From Glycera tridactyla (lineage: Eukaryota), in the NCBI GenBank assembly GCA_965644265.1, contig OZ286474.1, positions 49,972,001 through 50,036,000 on the forward strand: a stretch of DNA of 64,000 nt, written 5' to 3'. Below the pieces are notes generated by a model. That model did no database searches. It was not told the DNA's origin and saw only the letters and a program-made list of their open reading frames with translations. Shown one piece after another: positions 43,654 through 45,026 of the stretch (positions are counted from its first letter, which is position 1; each line of letters begins with the position of its first letter). Both the position numbers and the translations under genes were made by a program.

Positions 43654-45026
43654 CAGTAGAACCTGTCAAGAGTGCCACCCTAAAATGCACAAAAGAATTG
43701 GTCATTCAAGACGGTGGTCGTTCGTTGGAGGTTCAGACATATGAAGATCAATCCCTATGAAGATCGATACTTGTTGGATATTTTTCAAAATACAAATGGT
43801 GTGAAACAGTAGTTTATATAGTCTACGTTTGCAGAAGACAATATTTTCATGCAGAAATATCACCATCATTCGCTAGAAGCAGTGATTTTGGTTCTATCAG
43901 GCCAACTGTGTATAGCCATTACATCCAGGTGTCTCGGCCATATCAATAAAAAAAACTAATAAGCAAATGAATATAGGCGTGACACTCGAATCCACACAAA
44001 AATATCATCGTGCGATGAAAGGCTGTTTTGAAATTTGCTGAAAAACGTCTTTATTGATAAGAAATATGTAGTTTTGAAGCTGATTTTTCCATCTCCACCA
44101 TCATCATAACTGGGCCCAATTTTCTTCCATCTTTTCACGTGTTAGGTGAGAGTTAGAAAGAATGCGTCGAGTGCCGTGTACGTGGAGACCGTAAACGCCA
44201 AGTAGCGATCCCCGGGGACGCGCGAGTGGCCGGAGGCCACGAGTGCGTTCCCGGGGATCGCTATGAGGCGTTTACGGACTCCATGTACACGGCACGAGAA
44301 GCATTCTGGACTTATCATCCGATAAATGAATAGAATAATGAATCAGCTTCAATTTGGTGTTTAGATTGTGAAAATCGGACCAGCGGTTGATGAGTTTCAT
44401 CGATTTTTCTAGAGGCATCTTACCTAACGTTTGCCGTGACTCTGCACAAATCGAACGTGCGACACGGCCAGTTGACCCTTGACCCCAATTGTTTCGCTGT
44501 TCGAGTAAGCGCAAACAACACGTGATTTACGCTATCGAATTAAAGCACGGCAGCGAGGCGGGAGGGTAGACGGCGTGAAAATACCCACTAGACTCTATAT
44601 CGGATGATAAAGAGGCTAAACAAGAATATACTCTGCAATAAACATACAGGCAACAAGCTTGGCATCGGGTGATGGATGTTCACATATAAACCATTATGGG
44701 CATCTCTTTGTGGAAAGTTGGTCTAGCATGCAGGCGCGAATGATCTGACAATTGGCTATGGTTCTTCAGTCAAGCATCGTCACCAGTCATTCATTTATAG
44801 ATGGTTGATATTGCCCATGTCAGTGCTGATCGAGATGCCAATTTGTCTCAAATGGTCGTTTGTTGCAGGTAATTGCCAGCATTTGAGCCAGTTGCTGGTT
44901 GCATGGCCGCTTGTTATAGGTCGTTTGAGAAGTATTTGGTATTTTGGTGAGAAAATTAGTCAATCAAGACAGGTGATCGCTCATTGGGGGGGGGGGGGGA
45001 GGGATTGCTGGTGACAGGTTTCACTG
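43654..45026 (-). mobile_element. Long (~0.9 kb net) pogo-like non-autonomous element, copy 1
   Basis: TA|CAGTAGAACCTGTC ... GACAGGTTTCACTG|TA; colinear reverse complement of 56999-59168 (e.g. tatttcttatc.at.aagacgtttttcagc). Confidence 0.8.
44143..44640. mobile_element. CpG-rich insertion with a 147-nt hairpin; superfamily unknown (Crypton-like?)
   Basis: Absent from the twin copy at ~57420; 72-bp arms 44160-44231 / 44235-44306; tatcatccgata (~44313) vs tatcggatgataa (~44598) inverted. Confidence 0.7.

Follow-up and report, generated by a model that had tools for sequence, protein, structure and literature searches.

Cryptons are DNA transposons that encode only a tyrosine recombinase, with a domain related to DUF3504 and QRICH1 in the animal CryptonA-type elements (Goodwin 2003; Kojima & Jurka 2011, PMC3212892). 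[quoted passage not shown] Published descriptions state that animal Cryptons have no terminal repeats of any kind and are usually low-copy (PMC3212892, PMC8969392). Helitron2/Helentron elements and their HINE and DINE-1 derivatives have an asymmetric terminal inverted repeat, a subterminal partner immediately upstream of a terminal hairpin, an optional small hairpin at the other end, no TSD, tandem copies, and internal tandem repeats or microsatellites (PMC3627910, PMC4067079, PMC7492417). Imperfect palindromes are also recombined in bacteria by the tyrosine recombinases IntI and XerCD, at integron attC sites and at the CTX-phage attP(+) hairpin of about 150 nt, where conserved unpaired positions on one strand appear to specify which strand is used. 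IS200/IS605 and REP/RAYT elements, mobilized by HUH Y1 transposases, have subterminal hairpins, no TSD, and insert next to a short motif that is repeated at the other end of the element.

A hairpin at one end of a 458-bp repeat

The hairpin described here lies in a 64,000-nucleotide stretch of the Glycera tridactyla genome (the window; contig OZ286474.1, positions 49,972,001 to 50,036,000 of assembly GCA_965644265.1). The initial annotation described a 147-nt hairpin with a GGA loop and two sites at which CGAG faces CGAG to form tandem G·A mismatches, and this is confirmed. A repeat search gives a hairpin of 147/149 nt (44159–44307, + strand), with 73-nt arms at 44159–44231 and 44235–44307 that are 84% complementary, and a 3-nt loop at 44232–44234 in a GGCC-GGA-GGCC apex. 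The predicted DNA fold of the + strand is −75.3 kcal/mol (z = −17.4 against 200 shuffles), compared to −66.4 kcal/mol for the minus strand. The CGAG sites face each other at 44168–44171/44295–44298 and at 44223–44226/44240–44243, and a third, decayed site (CAAG at 44199–44202 facing TGAG at 44264–44267) is CGAG:CGAG in related copies. Two family-level G·T pairs (44222/44244 and 44217/44249) are Watson-Crick in many other copies, so the attribution of G·T pairs to drift holds.

The initial annotation did not recognize that the mobile unit is 458 bp (44153–44610, minus strand) rather than 147 nt. Read on the minus strand, the recombinase-sense orientation of its autonomous relative described below, this element (family A) runs from 5'-TTATCATCCGATA to GCATTCTTTCTAA-3'. 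Thirty genomic copies share exactly these ends with unrelated flanks, contigs from runs of three organism labels cover 44153–44610 and nothing beyond, and there are about 600 near-exact ends genome-wide. The initial annotation was correct that TIRs and a TSD are absent as far as the outer ends are concerned, as these read TTATCATCC... and ...TTCTTTCTAA and no duplication is present in the 30 copies, but it missed a 13-nt inverted repeat in which the 5' terminal repeat (44598–44610, TTATCATCCGATA on the minus strand) pairs with a subterminal repeat (44312–44324, TATCGGATGATAA on the minus strand). The terminal repeat is identical in subfamily B and in the autonomous element. The subterminal repeat is separated from the hairpin by a 4-nt spacer (44308–44311), and both repeat and spacer are conserved in copies L075 and L076, downstream of recombinase genes; 183 further genomic sites have variant spacers. 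Six terminal bases (44153–44158; TTAGAA on the + strand) lie between the hairpin and the element end, with a sharp boundary in all copies, and TTAGAAAGAATG is identical in the autonomous copies L075, L076 and L077.

The first bases of the 5' terminal repeat, TTATC, are the presumed recombination core, and the flanks next to the hairpin end mimic them. In 80 flanks on the 3' side (tallied by hand) the consensus is DTAYC, more fully D-T-A/C-T/C-C, with T at +2 in 61 of 80, and 100 flanks on the 5' side were also examined; the flank at this locus (44148–44152, CTCTC on the minus strand) fits the family consensus at +2 to +5. Equivalents of empty sites are present in host tandem repeats (in L065 and the flanks of L014), and head-to-tail copies with the junction ...CTAA|TTATC... 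exist. In contrast, the locus near 57420, which the initial annotation proposed as an empty site, is an old paralogue of the flanks that lacks the unit but aligns only up to 10 nt short of the insertion point, and is therefore not a clean empty site.

These features argue against an ordinary foldback element, a TIR MITE, or a chance palindrome with drifted mismatches. Long palindromes are common in invertebrate genomes, and a young burst of copies (0.5–2% divergence) would alone make every copy look alike, but the hairpin is at one end only, and the mismatches persist across lineages diverged by 20–30% and across phyla; we consider this reading refuted. A SINE is not indicated as there is no TSD or tail, nor a satellite unit as the copies are dispersed with unique flanks, nor a protelomerase-like hairpin telomere as the palindrome centre is an asymmetric 3-nt loop.

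A related element encodes a tyrosine recombinase

The initial annotation suggested that long members might encode a tyrosine recombinase or an HUH nuclease, and a long relative sharing the family A ends does encode a tyrosine recombinase. This 2.75-kb element on C40 (C40:25579983–25582728) matches nt 1–113 of family A with 91% identity and nt 288–458 with 79% identity, and the first 30 nt, the 12–13-nt terminal and subterminal inverted repeats, the spacer and the last 12 nt are identical. Its one long ORF, of 577 aa, matches the Pfam families DUF3504 (9.5e-24) and Phage_integrase (1.3e-9), and PDB sequence matches are QRICH1 and the catalytic C-terminus of XerA. Among seven proteins from three phyla R288/R294, H430-x-x-R433 and H456 are invariant, and although a tyrosine is present in the consensus SINNY and aligned to the XerA Tyr region, its column is not invariant in the alignment. 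A second copy is present on C51, three more recombinase lineages (E2, L066 and E3) have the same layout, and there are about 990 DUF3504 candidates in the genome. Homologues in acorn worm (Ptychodera), periwinkle (Littorina) and pearl oyster (Pinctada) share the layout and strand, although one foreign homologue (L082) has a downstream hairpin without the CGAG motif and a metagenome contig (L083) is mixed.

We therefore favor, with moderate confidence, the explanation that the hairpin is the end structure of a non-autonomous Crypton, an internal-deletion derivative of an element such as that on C40. The C40 hairpin is only 79% identical to that of family A, and a closer partner may exist or may have been lost; none of 150 scored recombinase genes lies beside an exact A-type end, and none of 183 A-type ends not preceded by the A/B interior lies next to a scored recombinase gene. 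A copy with 76% identity (L005) has an apex deletion and is of little use for covariation, and the region upstream of L020 contains only unrelated repeats.

The cis-architecture equals that described for Helitron2/Helentron, including the terminal and subterminal repeats with the hairpin between the latter and the 3' end, the absence of a TSD, tandem copies, a small 5' hairpin in E2, and internal tandem repeats in family 2 (PMC3627910, PMC4067079, PMC7492417). Family A could thus be a HINE, in which a Rep/helicase nicks at the TTATC-like motif at both boundaries, peels off one strand and uses the hairpin as a terminator, with the recombinase-bearing relatives being HINEs that captured a recombinase gene. 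The presence of the same motif next to both boundaries fits a site-specific nickase, and more than 100 Helitron_like_N hits with long open frames are present in the genome. However, the elements sharing the family A ends encode a tyrosine recombinase and no Rep/helicase, and the same gene sits in the same position and orientation in four diverged lineages here and in three other animal genomes, with the ends diverging along with it. No listed family end lies near any Rep hit, and the one Rep element whose terminal region was inspected, a tandem element on C29, has short C(GNA)G hairpins in its intergenic region but no similarity to family A. Known HINE palindromes are short, with stems of 5–10 bp, the hairpin here is about ten times longer, and the stabilizing motifs are on the strand opposite to the one that Helitrons transfer. 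The target also differs, as Helitron2 inserts within TT or upstream of a T with T runs at the boundaries, whereas here the first flank base after the 3' end is A in 26, G in 28, T in 22 and C in 4, and the 3' end is CTAA rather than T-rich. We regard the HINE interpretation as unlikely. The comparison with IS200/IS605 made in the initial annotation is only an analogy, as no HUH enzyme is associated with these elements and the chemistry, that of a 3'-phosphotyrosine recombinase, is different.

Conserved mismatches within covarying stems

Interestingly, the tandem G·A sites are retained while the surrounding stems change. They are kept in 29–30 of 30 copies, with the basal site unpaired in 30 of 30 (k=63,64) and the apex module (44223–44243, CGAG-TGGCC-GGA-GGCCA-CGAG, comprising tandem G·A, a 6-bp stem and a C(GNA)G triloop) kept in 29 of 29. 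Across eight diverged lineages 32 of 73 pairs show compensatory double changes, against a shuffle mean of 13 (0 of 500 reached 32), whereas all three tandem sites are unpaired in 8 of 8 (basal site, columns 18–19/146–147; decayed middle site, columns 49–50/115–116, where most read CGAG). Palindromes can gain apparently compensatory changes by template switching without selection, although this process would erase the mismatches rather than keep them. The sites are also kept in a family of unrelated sequence in the same window, and the apex module is found with a GTA loop in E3, L074, L075 and L076.

A generic apex module (CGAG-GCC-GNA-GGC-CGAG) has about 2,700 genomic hits, against 2 for the control, in at least eight arm contexts. 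When the loop is left free, 90 of 100 are GNA, with every middle base represented, and when the mismatch is left free, 80 of 100 are GA/GA with only 4 Watson-Crick conversions. On the strand antisense to the recombinase, mismatches are purine·purine rather than pyrimidine·pyrimidine (52 vs 7) and G·T rather than A·C (12 vs 3), and the loop is GNA in 9 of 10. C(GNA)G triloops of the d(GCGAAGC) type and tandem sheared G·A pairs in a 5'-YGAR-3' context appear to be unusually stable in DNA. Nearest-neighbour energies favor the G·A strand only modestly (0 to 9 kcal/mol), although this model does not parametrize sheared G·A well. The inference in the initial annotation that the recurring G·A sites are selected rather than the product of drift is thus supported.

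Alternatively, the CGAG motifs could act in ordinary duplex DNA as directional binding words (CAC-GA-GTG) for the recombinase or a host factor, placed in the same orientation on both arms of a Crypton end that never needs to fold. The motif and its flanks (CA-CGAG-TG) are strongly conserved as sequence across families, tyrosine recombinases normally act on duplex sites with an asymmetric centre, and the energy differences between the strands are small. However, the free variation of the middle base is the signature of a GNA triloop rather than of a spacer, covariation maintaining pairing over about 70 positions would not be required by duplex binding words, and the one-strand bias extends to all non-Watson-Crick positions, not only CGAG. 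We consider this doubtful.

It is also improbable that the hairpin serves something other than recombination, such as an origin or priming site for converting a single-stranded copy to duplex, a transcription terminator or RNA element of the recombinase gene, or a source of small RNAs. It lies 390–500 bp downstream of the recombinase stop codon in every autonomous element, and single-strand origins of rolling-circle replicons appear to be long imperfect palindromes. However, non-coding derivatives as short as 372–458 bp keep the hairpin together with the terminal repeats and almost nothing else, which is typical of cis-sites needed for mobility, and it is 6 nt from the element end. Moreover, the stabilizing motifs are on the antisense strand and would not be in the recombinase mRNA, and GNA triloops are a DNA rather than an RNA motif.

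A folded recombination site in Cryptons?

These observations suggest a model in which the recombinase excises the element as a circle by exchange between the two cores. In the joined form the terminal and subterminal repeats flank the hairpin and, when that strand folds or the duplex extrudes a cruciform, would extend its stem into a folded site of about 175 nt whose base holds the core. The sheared G·A pairs and the GNA loop would stabilize and mark the fold of one strand, such that the recombinase acts on a defined strand, much as integron integrase acts on folded attC or XerCD on the folded CTX-phage site. This is an analogy of mechanism only; the marks in those systems appear to be extrahelical bases or a central bulge rather than tandem G·A pairs. 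A single-strand exchange resolved by replication would also explain copy-and-paste amplification to thousands of copies. Recombination through a folded strand or cruciform remains an inference, however; no experiment or read evidence shows a circle, a single-stranded intermediate or recombinase binding, and tandem genomic copies give the same junction as a circle would. It is a tentative but intriguing possibility that animal Cryptons, whose mechanism has never been worked out, transpose in this manner, which would be the first such pathway in eukaryotes, and that, because their end architecture matches that of Helitron2, part of the abundant HINE/Helitron-N-like repeats annotated in marine invertebrates may in fact be Crypton derivatives.

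Cryptons are the least understood order of eukaryotic DNA transposons, and reviews list a short terminal direct repeat as their only structural hallmark. Here they have a conserved cis-structure composed of a terminal/subterminal inverted-repeat pair and a 150–200-nt hairpin with covarying stems, three conserved tandem G·A sites and a GNA triloop, all on one strand, with thousands of copies and conservation in at least three phyla. The system (577-aa enzyme, 458-bp substrate) is compact and could be developed as a site-directed integration tool if the folded-site model holds. The structure provides a diagnostic for non-coding Crypton derivatives, which would otherwise be filed as HINE or Helitron, and an explicit hypothesis for how the recombinase chooses its substrate and strand.

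The hairpin and the unit that carries it

The inverted repeat is real, with arms at 44159-44231 and 44235-44307 (73 nt, 84% complementary) separated by a 3-nt loop. As single-stranded DNA the + strand is predicted to fold at -75.3 kcal/mol (z = -17 against shuffles), CGAG faces CGAG at 44168-71/44295-98 and again at 44223-26/44240-43, and the apex is GGCC-GGA-GGCC. The opposite strand folds less well (-66.4 kcal/mol), and there the same sites read C.T/T.C, the wobble pairs read A.C, and the loop reads TCC.

The initial annotation described a 147-nt hairpin, but the unit is 458 bp. 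In this 2.04-Gb eukaryotic genome, thirty retrieved copies align over window positions 44153-44610, mostly at 97-98% identity, and read on the minus strand all begin TTATCATCCGATA and end GCATTCTTTCTAA. Their flanks are unrelated, and there is neither a target-site duplication (TSD) nor an inverted repeat at the outer ends. Copies of this family (family A) differ from their consensus by 0.5-2%, so this is a young burst, and a 24-nt word for the hairpin end occurs 607 times with at most one mismatch, compared with 0 for the control. Contigs from public runs under three marine organism labels cover exactly 44153-44610 and nothing beyond; 1,053 bases of the window as a whole read N. The 13 terminal bases (44598-44610) are complementary to 44312-44324, which lies 4 nt from the hairpin, and the hairpin ends 6 nt from the other terminus. 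Head-to-tail pairs with the junction CTAA|TTATC occur at two of the retrieved loci, L005 and L010.

Flanking bases were tallied by hand from two anchored pattern searches. After the hairpin end (80 sites), position +1 is A/G/T in 76 of 80, +2 is T in 61 of 80, +3 is A in 42 and C in 24, +4 is T in 46 and C in 20, and +5 is C in 39; before the other end (100 sites), G is avoided at -1 (6 of 100) and C is enriched at -2 (43 of 100). The flank DTAYC therefore mimics the element's own start, TTATC. Host tandem repeats provide clean equivalents of empty sites. In locus L014 the flanks read ...CACGCA|element|GTATCC..., and the intact word CACGCAGTATC sits 10 nt further on, whereas in locus L065 a 32-bp host repeat is interrupted exactly at a unit boundary. 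The DNA flanking the window copy (43988-44146 and 44611-44991) has a 72-78% identical inverted paralogue 13 kb away (57611-57021, reverse strand), so an older repeat or duplicated segment hosts the insertion. This paralogue, near 57420, was proposed as an empty site in the initial annotation and does lack the unit, but the alignment ends 10 nt short of the junction.

Helitron-like layout and linkage to a tyrosine recombinase

The arrangement of a terminal repeat, a subterminal repeat, and then a hairpin, with no TSD and with tandem copies, is that described for Helitron2/Helentron and their HINE/DINE-1 derivatives (PMC3627910, PMC4067079, PMC7492417), and the genome holds more than 100 Helitron-like Rep domains in long frames. 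We therefore first considered family A to be such a derivative, but several facts went against this. No listed family end lies near a Rep hit, known HINE palindromes are short, and in Helraiser only the top strand is transferred (PMC5876387), whereas here the stabilising motifs lie on the other strand. The one Rep element whose terminal region could be read also lacks these ends. At the joined loci L035+L044+L036 (G000:C29:54875699-54887053), two 100% identical Helitron-like Rep/helicase frames (2,062 aa) lie 7,758 bp apart, and the 1.5-kb spacer holds a 15-nt coding-like repeat run and two modules of short hairpins with C(GGA)G, C(GAA)G and C(GTA)G triloops on the ORF-sense strand.

A search of the genome with DUF3504, the Crypton-derived recombinase domain, found about 990 candidates. 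All 150 scored matches are over the cut-off and most have intact frames of 450-650 aa, and three of them lie within 1.5-6 kb of hairpin ends that were already listed, where roughly 0.1 would be expected by chance. Locus L065 on contig C7 (L065:1331-5098; G000:C7:98802031-98805798) holds two elements of one family inserted head to tail in the 32-bp host satellite. The first, E1, is non-coding, carries a nested 372-bp family-A-like element (1638-2009) and a (CA)n run, and has a perfectly paired hairpin apex with a TAC loop, as if the apex had been flipped or copied from the other arm. The second, E2, is 2,680 bp and begins ATAGACAGAAT, followed by a 173-nt hairpin with CGAG:CGAG sites and a C(GTA)G apex and then TTATTATATGAC; a 550-aa ORF with DUF3504, Phage_integrase and QRICH1 domains lies on the opposite strand, and the element ends with a small GGA-loop hairpin closing in GTCATATAATAA. 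At locus L066 a diverged copy (recombinase 60% identical) has the same ends in unrelated flanks, with GAA loops.

Locus L067 carries a further element, E3, with a 504-aa recombinase. Its terminal repeat TTATTATCTGAT is 10 of 12 identical to that of family A, its apex module is family A's, and four sister copies have 98-100% identical hairpins. At loci L075 and L076, downstream of recombinase frames of 577 and 581 aa, the sequence reads TTAGAAAGAATG-hairpin-GGAC-TTATCATCCGAT, and the terminus, spacer and subterminal repeat are identical to those of family A. The full element on contig C40 spans 25579983-25582728 (2,746 bp), starts with the first 30 nt of family A, and ends CATTCTTTCTAA; nt 1-113 of family A match it at 91% and nt 288-458 at 79%. 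Its ORF scores 9.5e-24 with DUF3504 and 1.3e-9 with Phage_integrase, and it aligns to QRICH1 and to the catalytic C-terminus of XerA. Seven such proteins from three phyla share invariant Arg residues, HxxR and His, and the consensus keeps ...SINNY..., although the Tyr column is not invariant in the alignment. Family A is therefore an internal-deletion, non-autonomous Crypton.

Conservation of the non-Watson-Crick positions

Within family A the two CGAG:CGAG sites are kept in 29 of 29 and 30 of 30 copies, but this reflects recent common descent. Subfamily B (at least 40 copies) has a hairpin about 80% identical with a block of paired changes, and it keeps both sites; its loop is GAA rather than GGA. 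In an alignment of eight lineages (A, three A variants, B, and the recombinase-bearing L075, L074 and E3), 32 of 73 pairs carry changes on both sides, compared with a mean of 13.1 in shuffles (0 of 500 reached 32) and at most 8 in slid registers. Three tandem sites are non-Watson-Crick in 8 of 8, and the middle site of the window copy has decayed from CGAG to CAAG. Both family-level G.T pairs are Watson-Crick in many other copies and are thus drift.

Interestingly, a second Crypton-like non-autonomous family in the same window (63315-64000, running off the window end; about 900 candidates, 78-93% identity) has an unrelated 151-nt hairpin, also a few nt from one terminus, with a GGCC-GAA-GGCC apex and two CGAG:CGAG sites. 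The hairpin of this copy has an apex deletion and is followed by tandem repeats of about 180 bp containing (GT)n, such that a satellite-like array sits inside the element, as is reported for HINEs. Genome-wide, the apex module CGAG-N0-2-GCC-GNA-GGC-N0-2-CGAG occurs 2,700 times (2 for the control), in at least eight arm contexts whose flanking stems co-vary. With the loop left free, 90 of the first 100 are G-N-A with all four middle bases, 8 are the CpG-decay product AAA, and 2 are other; with the mismatch dinucleotides left free, 80 of 100 are GA/GA, most variants are CpG decay, and only 4 have become Watson-Crick, although these first-100 samples come mostly from one or two contigs.

Ten hairpins were read on the strand antisense to the recombinase, and for the seven that carry the gene the strand was fixed by the gene. 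They show 52 purine.purine against 7 pyrimidine.pyrimidine mismatches, 12 G.T against 3 A.C, 19 tandem G.A sites against none of the opposite kind, and a GNA loop in 9 of 10. Because the lineages compared are related and not fully independent, the count of sites (19 to 0) and the gene-defined strand in six of six informative elements are the safer statements.

Recombinase homologues (30-50% identity) occur in Ptychodera flava, Littorina saxatilis, Pinctada imbricata, Mercenaria and many unnamed assemblies. In Ptychodera (locus L079, JASXRY010000026.1:8745491-8752077) a gene annotated as 'KIAA1958-like' is flanked by a terminal repeat (L079 2116-2133) that pairs with a subterminal repeat (4461-4478), which abuts a 190-nt hairpin with 78-nt arms about 390 bp after the stop codon. 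On the antisense strand the apex is CGAG-C-GAA-G-CGAG, which contains the GCGAAGC mini-hairpin word, and there is a second CGAG:CGAG site; this looks like an intact Crypton rather than a host gene. Littorina and Pinctada both have long hairpins about 480-500 bp after the gene with CGAG:CGAG on the same strand. In contrast, one unnamed assembly has a downstream hairpin without the motif, and a metagenome contig is mixed. The homologue in Mercenaria mercenaria (locus L080, CM038765.1:53503033-53533959) is called as a 26-kb multi-exon gene with only the DUF3504 domain and may be a domesticated or mis-modelled Crypton.

Inferred mechanism and comparison with described Cryptons

The mechanism by which these elements move is inferred. 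The recombinase would exchange strands between the TTATC core at the element start and the DTAYC core left in the flank, releasing a circle whose junction is CTAA|TTATC. In that joined form the two 13-nt repeats flank the hairpin, and when the strand folds they would extend the stem, such that the core sits at the base of a folded site of about 175 nt. The tandem sheared G.A pairs (in a 5'-YGAR-3' context) and the C(GNA)G triloop appear to be the most stable non-canonical motifs known for DNA, and as they occur on one strand only they could both favour folding and tell the enzyme which strand it holds, as extrahelical bases seem to do in integron attC and the imperfect hairpin in CTX-phage integration. 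Alternatively, CGAG could be a directional binding word in duplex DNA, although the free middle base of the loop and the co-varying stems argue against this. A one-strand exchange completed by replication would make transposition replicative, which fits the thousands of copies.

Animal Cryptons have been stated to show no terminal repeats, direct or inverted (Kojima & Jurka, PMC3212892), and a 2022 curation guide lists a short terminal direct repeat as their only feature and calls them low-copy (PMC8969392). Full-text literature searches, which did not cover most subscription papers or Repbase Reports, found no paper linking Cryptons with terminal hairpins, so prior description is not excluded. 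In this genome the approximately 990 first-look candidates for the Crypton recombinase domain fall into at least eight ORF-length classes (about 464, 484, 504, 514, 531-537, 550, 618 and 633-658 aa), most of them intact, an unusually large and diverse Crypton population for an order said to be low-copy.
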